A DNA stretch of 47,453 nt, counting the filler, from Platydemus manokwari (lineage: Eukaryota), in NCBI GenBank assembly GCA_037951405.1. It is 3 parts of 3 records of this genome, joined end to end, with 100 filler letters (N's around TTAATTAATTAA, not from the genome) between each part and the next. Parts side by side here need not be neighbours in the genome. Positions count along the whole stretch, not along the records: positions 35,695 to 47,453 come from JBBMOY010479998.1; 2 more parts are not named here. One strand, written 5' to 3'. Both the position numbers and the translations under genes were made by a program. Under the pieces are notes generated by a model that saw only the letters and a program-made list of their open reading frames with translations, did not search any database and was not told where the DNA came from. Position 1 is the first letter of the stretch, and each line of letters opens with the position of its first letter. This document shows, one piece after another, positions 35,695 to 47,453 of this stretch.

Positions 35695-35705
35695 AACAGC
35701 CATAA

Positions 35706-35706
<1 letters not shown>

Positions 35707-35760
<54 letters not shown>
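35707..35760. repeat. (AAT)n microsatellite
   Basis: About 18 units with one interruption. It produces the poly-Leu ORF 35643..35840. Confidence 0.95.
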
Positions 35761-35762
<2 letters not shown>

Positions 35763-35939
35763 GAATAAGATTAGTACAAAATATAAAGAAAAACAAATAA
35801 AACCAAGTTTAAACCAGGAAATAACAAAATAAATAATCATTACTTGACCTAGAAAAGGAGTGGGTCAGAGAAAATGATCGCGCAGTTATAAGATAAAAAA
35901 TAATAATAACAAACATTGTACCGGAAAGAACAATAAAAA

Positions 35940-36565
35940 TTTATATAGGCAAAATAAACATGGTCCCAGCGCAAGAAAGACTACAGTAAAGAAATTATGT
36001 CTAAAAACACTTATACAAACGGCCATACAAACCGAAGTAAAACTAAAAGCAATAGGTTCAGCGAAATTAAATAAACCAGAGATTAATCGATATTTCGTGT
36101 TATATATTTAATCAAAGATTTAATACTTGCCAAATTTGGGATTCGTGATCAGGAATTCGAGACTATATTTACAATCGTGAGTAATATAAAAGGAGAACTG
36201 ACGTAAAAATCATAATTTAATTAATTTATCATAATTCATCATTATAAATCGCCTTTAGTTGTTATCTTAAACTACCTGAGTGGTGCATTCCATATATTTG
36301 TAGTTTTGCTGTTTACGTTGTTTTGTTCTTAAATAAATTTTATTATTAAATCATCCTGTTATTATTCACGTTGTAAATAATTATATTTATTAATCTGGTA
36401 ATTGTTAACGTGTTATCGTGTGCTACAATGGGGCAATCCAGTCCTTTGATATTAATCAGTTGATCAACTATTAATTATCTTCTATATTTTTTGGTATATA
36501 CATCTTCATATTAGCTACTGGCGCCCTCTAGGACCAGTGTAGCACTAAAATTAACAAACACTCAT
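35940..36565 (+). mobile_element. LTR/leader-like repeat family B, copy 2
   Basis: Shares colinear blocks with 4100-4730. Confidence 0.5.
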
Positions 36566-37778
36566 AATAATATTGTAAATAATATGGTTACTTTTTAACT
36601 AGATGTAAAAGACTTTAAGACTGGCTTTATTATATAAAGTGTTCTAGCGTATATTATGGAAATTTTCTGTAAGACCTGTCTTCATTCTATTATTTATTAA
36701 AAAATTACACTGAAACCCTTTTTATTTCCCTTGCTCTAATATAGATGTTGGGTTTTGGTACTTATATGTTTGTATTCCCAACACCGGTGAGTTCTTAAGA
36801 TTGATCTGATTTAAATTTAAATCAACCCTATCGATTATCAGTCTATTTAATAAATACAATATCTTATAAAAATACTTATTTACTATATCAAATTCTTATA
36901 AACCAAATTATTATGAAAATATAAAATAAGACGTAAGACGATTTAATCTGAAAATTCCTCAATTGAACTTAAAACAATATTACAGAAATTTCCAATAAAT
37001 TACAATTACCAATAATTAATCAATTAATAATTCGGACCAACAAACAAGTTAATTATATTACACCAAAATGAATTTAACTCAAACAATTTAAGGTTAGGGA
37101 GTGGTAATTCAAATTTGACGAATCAACCTATATATTAATATTTTAAAGAGATATAGATTTTAAGATATAATTATTGACTTTCTCTCAAACATCGCACCTT
37201 TGAATTGATTCCTTGCTGATATAAAATCCAATATTGCCAATTGTTTTTAAGCTGAAGCCTGTGCGCTTTCCGTAATTTATGGATACGTCTTCTTGAAATT
37301 AATACGGTTGTCGGCAGTTTGATGAATTAGAGTTTTCGCTTCTTCAATTCCTTTTCTATTTTCAGACTCTCTGATTTTTCTCACTTCAAATTCTTGTATT
37401 TCAGATATTTGTGTTTAAGTTTTTATGAGTGAAATTAATGATTTTAGGTGCTTATTTATAGTATTTTAGAAGTGGAAAATTCGCTTTAGAAATTTAAAAT
37501 ATTTTTATTTTCCAACTTCAAAATTAAAATTATTTTATTTTACCCAAAAATTTAATTCTAATAATTTTAGACTTCTAGAAATTCCAACGAATTAATTTTG
37601 GAATTTCTATATATTATTAGCTCACTTAAACATTTATCTAAAATTCTATATAAATTAAATTAATTTTTCTATTATTGTTATTTTAGGAGCGCTATTTATT
37701 ATTTTTGTTGTCCTATTTATTTTAAAGTTTATTATCATTAATATTTCCATCATAATAATTGTCATTAAAAATATAATT

Positions 37779-38292
37779 TGTGACAAATACATTATACAAA
37801 CATTTGAATACAGTACACATTTAAAAGGAAAGATTTGGGAATTACATAATATAAGATATACAGATTAGAGACAAAATCATGAATAAATCAAATGTAAAAA
37901 TCAAATGTAAATGTTCATGAGAATCCGAGATCATATTGTTCGTCCAGATCTACACGTTTGTGCATTCCCCACCATCGGGAATTCTCATCTCTCGGATCTG
38001 TTGGGATTATTGGCTCCGTCTTGATTGTTTCCTGGGGTTCTTTCCGGGCGACCTTCTCGGGCTTATCTCCACGATAAACCATTCCATCCCAGTTACCATC
38101 TTGGTCGAACTCAATCCTTTCATCGGCATTTGTGGCTGTTATACTTTGAGCATTTGGTGGTATGTAATAAGATGTGCTTGGGGCGTTAGAGGCGCTTTCC
38201 CAACAGTGTGTTGATTTGAAATACCTAAGACTCCCACTTATTTATTTCCCAGTTTTTATTCACAAAGGTGTCTCTCCACTTAGTTGGAGACA
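37779..38292 (-). mobile_element. solo-LTR-like element (TGT...ACA, ~514 bp) containing a 108-codon stop-free frame
   Basis: A relatively GC-rich island. The minus-strand start tgtctccaactaagtggagagacacc recurs at 19149 (+) as tgttcccaactaagtggggagacacc. No target-site duplication is seen. Confidence 0.5.
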
Positions 38293-41178
38293 TATGACTT
38301 CAATTGACGAGTCTAACTGATAACAATAGATATCTTTTGTATTTATAAATAACAATTCGATTTATTTCATACAATTTATTTTCAGCCGAATTTGTTTTAT
38401 TTATCATTTATTATTTTTCAGGAATTTTACAGTGGCTCGACCTATTTATATTTTAATTATTATTGTTATTTATATTTTAACTAGAATTGTAATTATTATT
38501 GATAGAATTCTACTAGCCTGACGCTAAGGAATCTGAAAATATTGTCTAGATTTCTAATCAAATAAAAAGTTAAATTAAATACAGTTACTCTGTAGAGGTT
38601 TCCAGAAATTTAATAATCTTTTATATATTTTAAAATGTTTTAAAGTATCGTAAAATGAAAAATAATCTAATCTGACGTGCCAACTTGGTGATATTTCCCG
38701 AGTTTCTAAATCAAGATTCAGTCTAAGTCTATTAATTGGCTTTCGTACTGATTTAATTTAAATGTGCTTGTAAGTAAACAAATTTCTTTGTTTGCAAACT
38801 TAAAAATATGTACTTCTTCCTATTGCCATCTTAGCTAATTTCACTTTTAAAAATAAATCACTTAAATTAACCAATCAGAATTTATCCTAGGATAAGTCAG
38901 ACAATATTGTCAAGTTCATCAAATTATTTTTAATTAATATTTAAATAATAGTTTATAAATATATTACTTTCAAATTATAAACTATCGAAGATCAAAATTA
39001 AAATTATTTGTGAAAATGCTTTTAAAAATAATTTTATTTAAAACATATTTTCTGAAAAAACCCTTTAATTCCATTCAATACAAAATTTAAACCAAACAGC
39101 AGTTACGAATAAATATTCTTTTTAATAAGTACCGTATTTTCCGAATTATGACTATGAGTTAACTGATTAATATATTAAATTAAATCAAAAATGTAAAGCA
39201 AGATTTAATGCTCACATTCGCTTATATTAACATCACCATCTTTTTTTAATATTCCAGCCTTAATAAATTCTAAAATCTGTTTTAAGGTTTTAAATTATTC
39301 ATTATTTATTCCAATTTATGAATATAAAACGGGTTTGCTCACTAAAATTCATAAATATAGGCAGTAGACTTAGAAACATTTCTGTAAGTCTTTTGTGGTT
39401 AATTCAAGTTGGTTTTGATTGTTTTTAACTTCTTTAATAATTTGCTAAAACCAAAACTGATTAATTTTAGGTATAAATTAATATCTATAAAATGACGACA
39501 TATTAATTGATAAACGACAGAAATGAAGCAGAAATAAACAAAATGATTTCTTATTTTAAAAGTTCAGAAAATAATTTAAAATTTTAATCTCTAAAGAAGT
39601 TGTTTGAATTGTTGATGTAAAATTGAAATTGCCATGATGGAACAGCGCACATTGCCATTGAAGTATTGCCATTTAAATATAACCAAATTCGTCTATCTTC
39701 CTTTAAATTGGATTGGAGATAATAATTCCCTATTTGGTTTATGATAATCCAACAATTTCGTTATCTTGTTGCATGACATGGTTTTTAATTAAATTAAAAT
39801 TTATGTATTTCAAATTAATATTTTGTATTTCAAATTATTTCCATGGTTTTTATTGATTTTATTTATGAAAAATTAGTTTAAAACATTATTCCATTACCGT
39901 TAAATCAAATAATAGTAATGTAATAATAATTTGTTTGATATTATCATTGGTTTTCTCCTTCAACTTTGATCATGTCGTTCGATGTCTGATTTGAACAAAA
40001 AATAATATGATTGAAAATGGATTCCATAAACAATTGTTTTGTTTTTGTTATCATAACAATTTGATTAATGGCCTCACTAATTGACATTTAATTATTTAAT
40101 GAGAAAGTCATTATATTGGATTATTTATTTGTTGGATTTGTTTTTGTATGGAATGACTTTCATCTGGGCCGGTTATATTATAAGTATTGTCGTAATAAAA
40201 TGACACATTTCAAAATATCGGTTCTATTTTTATCAGTTTTATTTTCAATCTCTATTAATTTTTGTATTAGCAATTCTTAATAATACAATTCTGTATGATT
40301 GGCTGACATATATCGTTCGACTTGACTCATGTGTGGGTGATGAAATAAGTGACGAAATTTCACGTCAGATTGTAGAAAAATATTTTTGACAACTAACTAG
40401 TCTGAACTTTTTATTTTCTTCATGCTTGGACTTATAACAATGTAATACTAAATATATCAGTGTCGTTATTTTATTTTACTTTAATAATGTTTTGTTTGAA
40501 TCGCTATTTATATTTCTTTTTGTTAGTGTTTGAATGTCAGTTCATGTTTATTTAAAATGACATTTAAATCAACCGCATCAACAAATTCATTTGAAATTAT
40601 AAAATATAATAAGGTTTTAATATGTAGAAATTGGTTATAATGATTTTATAATCATATATTATTTTTAAAATAATAAATTATAATTTTTAGTTAGATTTTT
40701 AGTTTTACTATTGTTAATAATATTTTCGTAATTATGATATAAAAGAGTTTTTGTCACTGGTTGTATTTACTTAATTTATAACTCAATTAAAGCACGGTTT
40801 GATAGAATCTTAAAAGATACCAATTAAATAGTTAATGAAAACTTATCAACGACTAATAGGAATGGAAGTTGTTTTTATTGTTGTGTATATTTATCAACGA
40901 AATTCTAAAGAATTATTTTCAAAGAAGCTCTTTATTTCAAGTTCGCTTAACATTTCAAAAAGCTCTTGTCGTTCTAATATAAAGTTACTTGTGATCGGTA
41001 GATCGAACCATTGATAATCCCAACAGATCATTCAGTGCATATCGATTTCACAGTGCTTTCTCCTGATAAATAATAAATTGACCATTGAATTAATCATTTT
41101 GTAGAGTAAAGATGGAATATCCCAAAAGGAGTGCCTTTTCGCACCTTGAGCATTTGCTTCTATACACAGCCACACAGG

Positions 41179-41518
41179 TGTAGCAACCAGCCAATAAGAG
41201 AGGACTTTGGTGGAAGATTCTTACTAAAAAATGAGCATAACTACAAGTACACTCCCGATCACAAAAAAATCAATAAATCCTATGTGAACTTGAGAAACGA
41301 AAATCAAATTCAAACGTGATACACAAATTGCACACAAATTTCATGTATAAATGCTGATGTAGAGATGACCAACTGACAGTTGGAAGCCTAGTATTATAAG
41401 ATTTTTTGTATGTGATATGTGGAATGTTTTTGATGAATTTTGGGAACGTTTTTGTAAGTTCTGACTAGTACGATTGAGTGAAATATAAATTGCAACCTTA
41501 AATTTTTTGAACCCGACA
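41179..41518 (+). mobile_element. solo-LTR-like repeat family A
   Basis: Begins TGTAGCA and is colinear with 12784-13030. TATAAA lies about 20 nt before ATGACCAACTG. Confidence 0.7.
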
Positions 41519-43251
41519 ATTTGACAGTTCATTCACAAATGGAGAACTTATCAAGACTAAATATCAGTTCTTTTTCAATTATTCTCTAGACCGTAAACAC
41601 CTCTTGATACCTTGTTTCATACTGGATATTCATAATGCAGAATCTTATAACAAGAAAAAATTTCCTCCAATGATCTCAAAATGTATTTGATTGTTCTGAA
41701 TCATTTGAATATCTAAATAACTATCTTATAAATGTTTACTGCTTTCTCCTCTTATAATGACATGAGTACTGCTTCCTTAAACATTGTACCCAGGCTTCTA
41801 TTAAAATTATATCATATAAAAGAAACCGTGTTAAGCCAGACTAGGAACTCAGGACTTTGCCTTGCGTAAAATGAACTAAATTAAGTTAGAGATAATATCT
41901 AGAAATTCATAATGTTTTGTTCTAACTAATAAAGTAAAATTTTATTATAAAAATGATGATAATAAAAACAAGAATAATAAATAAAATTATTAATAATATT
42001 AAATCACCATAATAAATAGTGATAATAATATTTTACAATTATTTATAATTCTTTTGAGATCTATGATGTTCGATTGTGTTTGCTATGACAATAAATCATT
42101 CCTCGAATGAATATTTATTTTAATCATTGAATCCCAATTTACTAACAAATAATTCACAGTTTTCCTTTTGATAAAATTAAATACCAATAATAAAATATCA
42201 GTAAAATTGATATCATATATAAAAACTAGTCAACTCCACCATAATTATCGAACAAATAAAAAACATGACATTATCAATCACCATAATTGTTTTTTCCAAT
42301 CCGATCTCAACTTGAAATTCAACTTGACCAACTGTAAAAAGTTGTACTTTTACATTGAAAATTCCATTCATTTTGTCTGTTGTTGTTCCAATACAATATT
42401 TGATGATTATTTTCACGAAAATATGTTGTTACCAAATTCCAATGATAAAATCTGTTAATACCAGAACTAGATTTGTTAATGACTTAAAGCTTAGCAGGAA
42501 TTTCCTAGAGCGATTTAGTTCATCAAATTATGTATGTGGTAATTACATGAAATTAAAGCAAATACTATCGCTACCACTTGGAGAAAAGGTGTTTATTATT
42601 ACGAAAATAAACTATTGCTATTATTATTTTCATAACTATTATTAATTTATTATTATCATTATTAATAGTAACTTTTAGAATTTTATTATTATTTATTATT
42701 ATTTTAGTCAATCTGACCAAATGAAATCTTAAACCGTTCCATTATATTATTATTTTATTAAAGATTTCCTTGTTTTCCGCAATAAATACTTAGAATAATC
42801 CTATTAATTGGATTTATTATTATTAAAATAAATAAATAAATATTCAGATGACTATGATAAAAACATGTTGGTGTCTGCATTTATCATCGAATTATCACGG
42901 AAACTGTTATTTTTGGAAGTTCATAAATTATTTATGATAAAACTTAAAAATCATATTCGCACATTTTTATTTCATAACCATTGGACAAAAAAATAAATCA
43001 TGGAAATCATAATCGAAATATGAATGTACATTAATATATATATTTTTATCACAACATTTAATGAGATTCTCTGTATCCGTTTTACAGTCGCAAGAGGCAA
43101 GGGTAGTAGTAATGATTGTGATCTGACAATTCTGCTATCACAATACAATGACAATTGGATGGTTCTCACAACACAAAAACTTTGGATAAAATACTGAAAT
43201 GCCACCTCAGAAAAATAAAGGATTTCCCATAACCAAATCACCACTACTCCA

Positions 43252-43676
43252 TCAGACATTGACGTAATAATGGCATATGTTCATTTCCTGTAGACATTTA
43301 CAACGAACATTGGAAAGAACTGTATGATCGAAAGGCCACGCAACATTGTTCATAGACCATTCTCGACACATCATTCGGGCACAAGCATCCAGACATTTGT
43401 AAGCTGTATTAAGTTGACATTGGAATATTCCAGTCGCTAGAACGAAAAACATTGTTTATTCAAATGATATAGCAATAAACGAGAGTTACTTACAATCTTC
43501 TTGAACCTCTGCTAAATTTTCTGGGCACGGTCGATTCATTTTATCAATGGTGAATGCTGAAATACCAATGAAACAAAATAATAATATCAACTTCTAATGA
43601 TAAGATTACCCGAGCTAAGTGCTATTAAAGCAATGACAATAAAAACATTATATTTGAAAAGTATTTTAGTATTCAT
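43252..43676 (-). CDS. secreted cysteine-rich protein, 104 aa, 3 exons (43676-43610, 43556-43494, 43436-43252)
   Basis: Two phase-1 GT-AG introns (53 nt gtaatc..ttcag; 57 nt gtaagt..ttctag) join into one frame: MNTKILFKYNVFIVIALIALSSAFTIDKMNRPCPENLAEVQEDSTGIFQCQLNTAYKCLDACARMMCREWSMNNVAWPFDHTVLSNVRCKCLQEMNICHYYVNV*. It has a signal-peptide-like N-terminus and 8 Cys. Confidence 0.85.
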
Positions 43677-43714
43677 AGTATTTAGATATAAAAGGAACAA
43701 GTTGAGAGTCGATA

Positions 43715-44455
43715 TTTATATACGTCATTGACCAATGCACTCCACGATATATTCTTATTGGACGATTGTAATTCCATCAATGAAGAGTAGGTGTGGTCAA
43801 TTATCGTGACGAGAGAACCACGTGATTAAATCGTGTGAGAAATGCATGCATTCAACATGCCAAAAAGATGTAGTGAAATGACATTTGTAAGGCCACTGGG
43901 ATTACGTGACAGAGATTCTGAGTTTTGATCTGTCATTTGTTGTTCCATCCACTGATGATTTGGAAACATTACGTGATTTCATATCAACTGGTCAATTTGT
44001 ATGCGATTTCCCCAAATCTATTTCAGCAACTCAAATATTTGTGATATCCACAGACAAACTATCAATATGATATCGATTAATCGAGGAAATGGATTTTCGT
44101 TTTAATCAATTTTGTTAGAAGATCACTCATTCGAAATTCACTCATGAAGCTTATTTAAACAAGAATTCGTATTTTTATCAATAATAATTTATCGTGAATG
44201 TCGAACAATATTTTGAAGATGTATTTCGATTTTAAGATGTAATTTGGACAACTCAAATATATCGATTTTTATTCGACATTTTTTTCGGTAGTTATTGATA
44301 ATTCGTGTTTATCATTAAAGACTATTTTACTTGTCTTCCCCAGTTCCGAAAGTTGTCAAATTAAAAAAAGGAAAAAGCTTGGTGGCACTTTCATTTTGTG
44401 TATCCGTTTTGTGACAACTCGTGTGAATGTAGGTGTTGAGAACACGTGATTAAAG
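43715..44455 (-). promoter_or_regulatory. putative promoter of the Cys-rich gene: TATA box plus clustered ACGT-core motifs
   Basis: Minus-strand TATATAAA at 43722-43715 next to TGACGTA. GAGAAC(C)ACGTGATTAAA occurs twice (43813, 44438) and ATTACGTGA twice (43901, 43968). Confidence 0.5.
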
Positions 44456-46855
44456 TGGATTTTGTTTTTCATGAATAAATGAGTTGTTATTGAGTTGGTG
44501 AATGAAAACTGGTTGATTCTATTTCACATGAATTTAGTCAATCAATAATTCGATTTTAATCAATTGTTTGGAATAGACTATTCTGAATATCAAGCAGATA
44601 TACTGATAATTTAACCTTAAACTAATCATATTATGCAATGAAGTTATTGATTTGATTTCATTCCGCTCTGTGGAGATGAGTCCGACATGTTGCACTATTG
44701 GCAAATCAGAAATCATAATAAGTTAAAATTAGATAAATCAATTGATGGATTTTGTTTTGCAACGTAAATATTGAACAATAAAAAACAAATCAGTTATTTT
44801 TTTAATCTAGGTCATAATTTTTTCGTTACGAAGTGTATGTGTGTGTGTCATTTAAAACAAAAAATTAACAAAAACTCATCATAAATAATAATGAGACGGT
44901 GATAAATCGAGTGGCTGATAAAATCAATTCAATATCATAATAATAATAATATTTTGTTTACAAAATCTGAAATGTTCAGAAGGCTTTTCTATCATATTCC
45001 ATTATTGGAATGGCATCGTAACGGAAAGAACGAGTTTGTACGCAATCATTTGAATTCGAGCCAAATCTAATATTAATCGAATAAAGACTTGATAAACTAT
45101 ATTTCAGAAAAATATTGATTTGGTCAAATGTATTTACAATAAAATGAAAAATTCACTTTATTCAAACAATGCCATAATATTTATTGATTATCATGAAAGG
45201 TTATCATGTGAGTTATTTAGTAATTGTCTGAATAGCTGACACATTTTTTGACATGTTGCCAAATATCTTGAAACTAATTATTATTATGATTATTATTATT
45301 GTCATGGCACCAAAAGATTCGACAACATGCTCATTCTTATATTTAAATTATTAGTCAAATTTGAAGGTAATTTTTCTGAAGTGAAAATAAGAAAGAATTT
45401 TTTATAATATTAGAAAATTCTTATCAAATCAAACTAAAAACAAGCTCATTGGTTGCGCTTAATTGATTTTCTCTTTGTGTCTTCAATAGATTCTGATAAA
45501 CAAAAGTGAGGGAAAATGTATTTTCTGAAATTTAATTGATATCAATTGTGATGTAAAAACTATTTGAAAACAAATATCCCAGATGTAACACGTGAAATAA
45601 TGAAATCTAAAACATTTATAAATAAACTCTCCAATGATTGATATTGATTGTTAATGCTATATAAAACATTGATCGAATTTTCAACGAGCTCCAGAGAGAG
45701 CTTATCAATTTTAATTTGGGTCAGTTCTATTAAAAGTCTTGTCTGATTTGGGTGATTGGTAAAACAATTTTCAATATAGTCTGTCAAGGAATTACCTGTT
45801 GTGGATACCAGAATTACTGTTTTCGACAGAACAAAAAAAATATTTTTATAATACATCAGTTTTCAAACATATTTTAAAATATTTAAAATTTATTTCCATC
45901 TAATTTGTCTTCGTTTAATTTAATTCCAATCAAAATGCTCACATTTTTATACTAAATCTTTATTTTTTTATTCAAAAGATTTAAATTTTATTTTTAATAA
46001 TTTTAATAATTTTTAAAATTGAGAGGTTATCAGTAATTTTTTAACCAAGATCATTTTATAAATATCAATATGGTATATTTATTTTTAATTTAATTTTTTA
46101 AAAATATCTTTTAACTCAAATTTTAATAATTTTAATCTTATATAAATTTTAATTATTTATCGTATTTTTAAATAAACTTCACAATAGATATGTTTGATAG
46201 ATTATTTAGAATTGATCGATCATTATCATTATTGTGGGGAAAATTTAAAAGAAAAAAATCAACAATAATTTAATAATAATTTATTTAATGAATTTAAATA
46301 ATTTAAAAATAATTTTAAAAATTAAAAAAAAATATATTATAATTATTAAGAAAGTTTTTAGAAAAAAATTGAACATTAGGTAATTTTAAATAATTTAAAT
46401 TTATTAATCTACTTATACGAGTGATTAAAATAAACAGTCCTTCCTTTCTATCATCCTTTTGAATATTGTGATAAAATTTTATGTTTGGATTTGTATATAT
46501 TGAATTATCATTTGCTAACAATTATCGCTACTACTGTCTATTATCAGTAGCATATGATATACACTTTTCCATTATAATGCCTTACATATAATGTTATCAT
46601 AAAAAAATATAAGTTCCATGTTTGAAAATGTTAAATCATGATTAATTCAATAAACCATTGATTTTTTGCACATATTGTATGTTGTTCCTATGAATTGAAT
46701 GAATGCAATCTTAACTCTGACATTTCACTATGTGCTGTTATTGAAGCCTTAATTAAATTTTAATTAGAAGAACTGAACTGTCAAATATAATTGTCATATA
46801 TATTGCAATTAATAAAGTTATTAGTATAATTCTGAATAAATTTTAATTATAGTAT

Positions 46856-46885
46856 CACACACACACACATGTATATATATATATT
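46856..46885. repeat. (CA)n/(TA)n compound microsatellite
   Basis: cacacacacacacatgtatatatatatat. Confidence 0.9.
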
Positions 46886-47002
46886 GTTGAGTGACATGAA
46901 ATTCTGCAAAACGAAATTGCACCTTGCTTAAGCATTTTAAATATTGACATGCTTACACTCCAGTACAGGAATAATAATAAGCCAATCATAGTGAAGTTTA
47001 GA

Positions 47003-47260
47003 TGTAATCGACCATTGGAAGAAAGAGCACGATTGGAGCAACAAAGCACGTATAAGTGAGTGACCATTCCCACTCATACAAAAACTTAAAAATCAATAAG
47101 AACATAGACAAACAAATAACGAATTAAAATGATACATGACACAAAAAATTACAAACCGATTACAAAATCGATGTAAAGATGACCAACTGCCAGATGGAAA
47201 CTAAGTTTTTGGTGATATTTTTAGCAGAAAGGTTTTTGTGTAGTGTACAGAATACTAGAT
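47003..47260 (+). mobile_element. solo-LTR-like repeat family A, diverged copy
   Basis: tgacca.tc...tcatacaaaa, tgataca and gatgtaaagATGACCAACTGcca (47179) match the 12.8-kb and 41.3-kb copies. Confidence 0.6.
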
Positions 47261-47453
47261 AAGAAATTATATTAATTACCCTCTATTTCACAGTCTGAGT
47301 TTAATTCATTCTTTAAAACTATTCAACAATATATAAATAATTGGCTAAAGTTAAAAAAAGGGTCCTACAATAAAAATTTAAAATTGTGGAGTGTATTGCA
47401 AAAATCTATATAGATTATTTAATTAAATTCTTTAATAACTTTTTGAATTTTTT

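Follow-up and report, generated by a model that had tools for sequence, protein, structure and literature searches.

The window examined here is a stretch of 47,453 nucleotides from Platydemus manokwari (Eukaryota; NCBI GenBank assembly GCA_037951405.1), composed of three parts of three records joined end to end, with 100 filler letters between each part and the next. Its last part, positions 35,695 to 47,453 (record JBBMOY010479998.1; below, the 11.7-kb piece), carries a cryptic gene on the minus strand at positions 43252–43676. On sequence grounds this is a functional three-exon gene and not a chance open reading frame (ORF), and its product is a divergent member of an unnamed protein family otherwise seen only in flatworms. 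We consider it probable that this gene is functional and that it encodes a secreted family domain with four disulfides, acting as an extracellular binding module.

Gene structure and family membership

The exon and intron boundaries of an earlier reading of this DNA (the original prediction) proved correct to the base: direct reading of the minus strand and exon-by-exon translation reproduce the same three-exon model. Exon 1 (43610..43676) starts with the ATG at 43676, encodes the signal peptide and consists of 22 codons and the first base of a split Ala codon. Exon 2 (43494..43556; 38% GC), which was aligned to the family motif, encodes the mature N-terminus, with Cys1 within the family PCPE motif. 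Exon 3 (43252..43436; 39.5% GC) encodes Cys2 to Cys8, including the CxxxC and CxC motifs, and ends with the TGA at 43254–43252. Both introns are in phase 1. Intron 1 (43557..43609; 53 nt, GT..AG, 22.6% GC) starts with GTAATC and ends with TATTTCAG; intron 2 (43437..43493; 57 nt, 28% GC) starts with GTAAGT and ends with TTCTAG. Background GC content of the 11.7-kb piece is about 25%, compared with 38–40% in exons 2 and 3 and 23–28% in the introns. Retention of either intron leads to a stop within a few codons, after five codons in the case of intron 1. The joined coding sequence is 315 nt long (104 codons and the stop); it was used only for length, Cys gaps, mass and isoelectric point (pI), and the exons were searched one by one. 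The second splice junction is supported by homology, because exons 2 and 3 abut exactly where the family domain runs unbroken: K-P-C-P-E of exon 2 and T-G-x-F-x-C from exon 3 are contiguous in the aligned homologous proteins.

A search of related proteomes, an approach proposed with the original prediction, was run with HMMER and found flatworm relatives, none of them characterised. The scan of exon 3 against 1.84 billion representative proteins gave seven matches (E-values from 7e-20 to 9e-4). The best of them is P0001, a protein from a public assembly (66% identity, E 7e-20). The other six are all from flatworms (33–38% identity, E 1e-5 to 9e-4), namely from the genera Mesocestoides, Hydatigera, Protopolystoma, Fasciola/Fasciolopsis and Trichobilharzia. 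The family range in the scans covers trematodes, cestodes and one monogenean. A profile word search retrieved 21 proteins of 89–129 residues, all from Neodermata (Schistosoma, Heterobilharzia, Trichobilharzia, Calicophoron, Paragonimus and Clonorchis), and Opisthorchis was added via 90% clusters. The family is kept in every flatworm class sampled. Trematode genomes have two or three copies each, as in every sequenced schistosome, liver fluke and lung fluke; schistosomes have three paralogue groups in the tree, and the two Clonorchis genes have consecutive locus tags. Homologues carry N-terminal hydrophobic leaders, and one of them is named 'Secreted protein' by UniRef.

Conservation of the family is concentrated on its cysteines and on a few further positions. 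A 25-row alignment (A2) shows almost no variation at the eight Cys residues or at G, F, A, R-C-R-C and Y, and only one of the eight spacings differs among the rows. The Cys pattern x13-16, x7, x3, x4, x21, x1, x6 is shared by the window product and 44 of 52 family proteins; the others are truncated or fused predictions. Direct searches with exon 3 were blank or gave noise in Pfam, in a 5-residue word search, among PDB sequences and in the ESM Atlas. No Pfam model reaches its threshold for any family member, and the searchable literature, queried by locus tag, accession and topic, contains no paper on the family. The suggestion that the protein belongs to a possibly undescribed family holds in that the family is unnamed and unstudied; its relatives do exist in databases, as uncharacterised flatworm-wide proteins.

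Two cestode entries (P0002 and P0003) have two domain copies joined by unrelated sequence, and P0041, from Schistosoma curassoni, is a fusion with a protein that bears the name 'Amiloride-sensitive sodium channel'. All these entries are probably merged predictions of tandem or neighbouring genes.

A family profile built from 23 flatworm proteins, the window sequence being excluded, matches the exon-3 frame with an E-value of 7.2e-15 (50.5 bits, profile positions 56–115), and the next best of the 660 open segments of the 11.7-kb piece scores E 1.7 with the same profile. This match, made with a profile independent of the window sequence, is far stronger than expected by chance. The wider possibility that the ORF arose by chance, or that it is a pseudogene or silent relic, could draw on two facts: a public sequencing-run search matched no RNA run and a single DNA data set, whose contig is identical to the window and probably its source, and the surrounding 11.7 kb contains no other recognisable gene. 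Against it stand, besides the profile match to exon 3 (E 7e-15), the conservation with the P0001 contig of an unbroken frame, the eight Cys, the splice sites and the stop, and the presence of a promoter block that is conserved and of a TATA box. We regard such an origin as extremely improbable, and the reading as a functional gene is retained.

The P0001 contig has the same gene arrangement. P0001 itself is a 268-residue read-through ORF on a 2148-nt contig, and only its residues 139–196 are real coding sequence. The many Trp residues of this entry suggest that it was translated with TGA as Trp, and the database 'protein' appears to be an artefact spanning the promoter, introns, exon 3 and untranslated region (UTR) of an AT-rich eukaryotic contig. 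When the window is translated with the same code (TGA as Trp), the two sequences are collinear from the promoter block near 43847 via exon 3 to 43036, and by our reading of the alignment the stop of P0001 would fall at the same codon as that of the window gene. The locus is thus preserved in a related species. Within exon 3, the two sequences are 100% identical over the C-terminal hairpin (16 residues around R-C-K-C); many residues of the helix and loop have been replaced, with every Cys kept. A maximum-likelihood tree was built from the exon-3 regions of the window protein, P0001 and the trematode and monogenean copies only; in it, the window protein and P0001 together occupy a very long branch that lies outside the rest. 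This placement sets the source apart from the parasites sampled, and its GC content of 25% and its introns of 53–57 nt would be in keeping with a free-living flatworm. A metagenome scan for DNA of relatives yielded no confirmed locus.

Predicted secreted product and fold, and proposed role

The product is a protein of 104 residues with eight Cys separated by gaps of 16, 7, 3, 4, 21, 1 and 6 residues; the computed joined coding sequence thus reproduces exactly the spacing given by the original prediction. That reading also proposed a signal peptide followed by a mature chain of about 81 residues, and the n-, h- and c-regions of such a leader are all present in exon 1: a basic n-region (K4 and K8), a hydrophobic core with an 11-residue Kyte-Doolittle maximum of 3.19 at residues 11–21, and S-S-A ahead of the proposed cut. 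The predicted mature chain has 81 residues, a mass of 9.5 kDa and no N-glycosylation sequons. Its pI of 5.5 makes it acidic, in agreement with the earlier remark that it is not strongly cationic, and net charge across family members spans -3 to +8.

Two AlphaFold models were built, one for exon 3 of the window gene and one for a relative. The single-sequence model of window exon 3 is poor, with a predicted local distance difference test (pLDDT) of 62; it consists of a strand, a helix, a long loop and two further strands, with CxxxC in helix 11–19 and CxC in strand 43–48. The model of a Fasciola hepatica member (P0010), made with the A2 alignment, is confident, the domain block means of pLDDT being 91–97. 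Cys1 lies in an N-terminal arm and Cys2 in a short strand; these are followed by helix 65–73 with C68 and C72, Cys5 four residues after the helix, and a long loop ahead of a hairpin of strands 97–102 (C99 and C101) and 107–112 that carries CxC and Cys8. The strand-helix-strand-strand order is common to both models. No solved chain matched the confident model, the best Foldseek hit having an E-value of 1.9 and a second look with VIA finding nothing.

The combination of AlphaFold and Foldseek proposed earlier, when run on the family, assigns CxxxC to a helix and CxC to a strand and finds no PDB counterpart. Judged from the models, a fold resembling the cysteine-stabilised alpha/beta (CS-alpha/beta) type, a PAN-like fold and a type not yet solved are about equally probable. 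The first two schemes differ only in the partner of C4, which would be C7 in the former and C5 in the latter.

The CS-alpha/beta fold was the interpretation of the original prediction, and it is plausible but unproven: the helical CxxxC and the CxC strand are predicted by both models, and neither Foldseek nor VIA-align gave a significant structural match. In its strict form, a true four-disulfide fold of the scorpion-toxin type with the pairs C1-C8, C2-C5, C3-C6 and C4-C7, the protein would be a toxin-like ion-channel modulator or a defensin-like effector. In its order of cysteines, C..C..CxxxC..C..CxC..C, the family agrees with the long-chain scorpion toxins. The ten best family-bearing neighbours in the language-model Atlas all belong to PF00537 (score 0.78), and kurtoxin is present in the Foldseek list at an E-value of 6.3; both of these results are below the reliability limits of the tools. 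We consider this strict identity unlikely.

A very divergent PAN/apple module, which would pair C3-C6, C4-C5, C1-C8 and C2-C7 and act in adhesion or in protein or carbohydrate binding, was raised by Foldseek on the poor, low-confidence exon-3 model, which drew N-domain chains of HGF (22–23% identity, E about 2). UniRef names two cestode members 'Apple domain-containing protein', and the cestode entry P0003 has a weak match to PAN_4 (E 1.2, 9.7 bits vs the 27-bit cut-off). The PAN core, as in factor XI and HGF N domains, is spaced as C-x3-C-x4-C, an aromatic-rich strand and a later strand Cys. The family core mirrors this spacing. However, the Pfam PAN models stay below threshold on the window exons and on all of the more than 30 members examined, neither Foldseek nor VIA-align (48,161 chains) retrieved a PAN, apple or HGF chain with the confident P0010 model, and CxC is not a PAN feature. 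The confident model did not confirm the PAN/apple identity, which we hold to be quite unlikely.

We return to the reading as an extracellular binding module. The product would enter the secretory pathway and lose a signal peptide of 23 residues, and the mature chain is predicted to fold into one compact 81-residue domain with four disulfides. Its putative layout consists of an arm with Cys1, a strand with Cys2, the CxxxC helix, Cys5 just past the helix, a 21-residue loop, and the hairpin with CxC and Cys8. Such a stable module could serve outside the cell as a ligand or as a factor that binds proteins or glycans. The contact surface would likely be the conserved hairpin, in which R-C-[RK]-C and the following aromatic residue are invariant; from strand geometry, the basic side chains of R-C-[RK]-C are expected to face away from the disulfide core. 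A toxin-like channel modulator is a possible alternative function. A membrane-disrupting cationic peptide is unlikely, because the window protein is acidic and family net charge ranges from -3 to +8.

Several points, in addition to the lack of a matching RNA run, weigh against this reading. The first splice junction is suggested by frame, GT-AG ends and signal-peptide logic. The binding role is deduced from how small the protein is, from its secretion signal and from the pattern of conservation. The window protein does not have the C-terminal YNP-x-P tail of the family, and with this tail absent and the branch very long its function may differ from that of the trematode copies.

Many invertebrates signal or defend themselves via small secreted disulfide-rich proteins, and parasites handle their hosts with them. 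The window gene is tied to a family of schistosomes, liver flukes, lung flukes, tapeworms and a monogenean, which includes major human and livestock flukes and is without a name, a Pfam model or a solved structure. The family is a reasonable target for structure determination because its confident AlphaFold model has no PDB counterpart, and it is a candidate marker or intervention target because it is restricted to flatworms. We view the result as a solid annotation of moderate value, without mechanistic surprise, that draws attention to a secreted and so far unstudied family of flukes of medical importance.

Flanking sequences and the surrounding piece

The upstream region 43700–43847 of the minus strand contains ATTGG (an inverted CCAAT), TGACGTA and TATAAATA, all within 40 nt. 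The TATAAATA box (43713..43720, minus strand) was found by direct reading 44 nt 5' of the ATG, preceded by the other two motifs, and its flanks are kept in the contig of P0001; a promoter role of this region is suggested by these motifs. About 100 nt further 5' of the promoter motifs, a block is nearly unchanged in the same contig. This conserved promoter block (43760..43847, minus strand) was detected by tblastn with P0001, and an identical 9-residue block of pseudo-translation is present in both sequences. On the other side of the gene, a probable 3' UTR (43036..43251, minus strand) is collinear with the P0001 contig and contains ATTAAA at 43062–43057, and a further AATAAA is located just past it at 42971–42966. 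These hexamers may be used as poly(A) signals. Hexamers of this type are frequent in DNA of 25% GC.

In the remainder of the 11.7-kb piece, neither tblastn nor the family profile found paralogues of the window gene; a weak match at 35897–35965 was rejected as low-complexity sequence. Rfam and tRNA scans found no RNA genes, and the other ORFs of the piece have no Pfam match. An island of about 340 nt at 37898–38241 has a GC content of 46% against the background of 25% and is open in several frames on both strands. Its longest frame, 108 residues on the minus strand, includes a calcium-loop-like stretch, D-Q-D-G-N-W-D-G. The island has no match in Pfam, PDB or Rfam; it could represent a mobile-element remnant or an exon of a gene not yet recognised. 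Trinucleotide (ATA/TAT) microsatellites are located at 35702–35768 (22 copies) and 42618–42703 (28 copies).

Comparison with known proteins

A recurrent resemblance to C1q (PF00386), always below threshold, was observed for the first 27–40 residues of the domain, encoded by exon 2 and the start of exon 3 (43420–43554). Several members gave C1q matches with Pfam E-values of 0.016–0.9 and at most 15 bits vs the required 23.7, at profile positions 2–44 of 127, and in a PDB profile search the N-terminus of the domain drew adiponectin and C1q chains. The family resembles the C1q strand B-C motif F-x-K...Y...TG-x-F-x-C-x-VP, the likeness being weaker in the window protein. In contrast to C1q, the family covers only the first third of the profile, and the remainder is a Cys-rich helix and hairpin with no jelly roll. 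The resemblance may be due to chance, or the region may be the remnant of a C1q head. It could also be imagined that the family represents an undescribed disulfide-rich fold confined to flatworms, in which the first strands of C1q are combined with a helix-hairpin core of the CS-alpha/beta-like type, and that it serves as a conserved, secreted signalling ligand common to free-living and parasitic flatworms. We give this idea little credence; if true, schistosomes and liver flukes would have in this family an extracellular factor that is lineage-specific and either druggable or of diagnostic use.

SmKK7 (Smp_194830) is a small, secreted 'scorpion toxin-like' protein of the schistosome nerve net, at one time compared to a scorpion venom protein, with a similar reported taxonomic range (PMC9062357). 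Peptides derived from its published cloning primers (PMC9062357) are present in none of the 52 family proteins, and SmKK7 therefore belongs to a different family.

The long-chain scorpion sodium-channel toxins (PF00537) have the same order of Cys motifs and are the nearest language-model neighbours. The window protein, which gave no significant match to these toxins by sequence or by structure, differs from them in not being basic and in the long stretch inserted between its helix and hairpin. The PAN/apple domains (PF00024, PF14295) have a similar length of about 85 residues, and in them too a helical C-x3-C precedes a nearby Cys and an aromatic strand; the family has CxC in addition.

Among known proteins, the closest similarity is to the flatworm members, which are uncharacterised in all cases: Fasciola hepatica D915_004135, Schistosoma mansoni A0A5K4F563 and A0AA82N7X6, Clonorchis sinensis CSKR_106959/106960, Opisthorchis viverrini T265_06924/06925 and Protopolystoma VEL32614.1. 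Unlike these members, with which it has 33–38% identity, the window protein is acidic and has a shorter N-terminus ahead of the domain. Like them, it consists of a signal peptide and one domain of about 84 residues with identical gaps x7, x3, x4, x21, x1 and x6, and the motifs PCPE, TG-x-F-x-C and R-C-[RK]-C are common to the window protein and the flatworm members.
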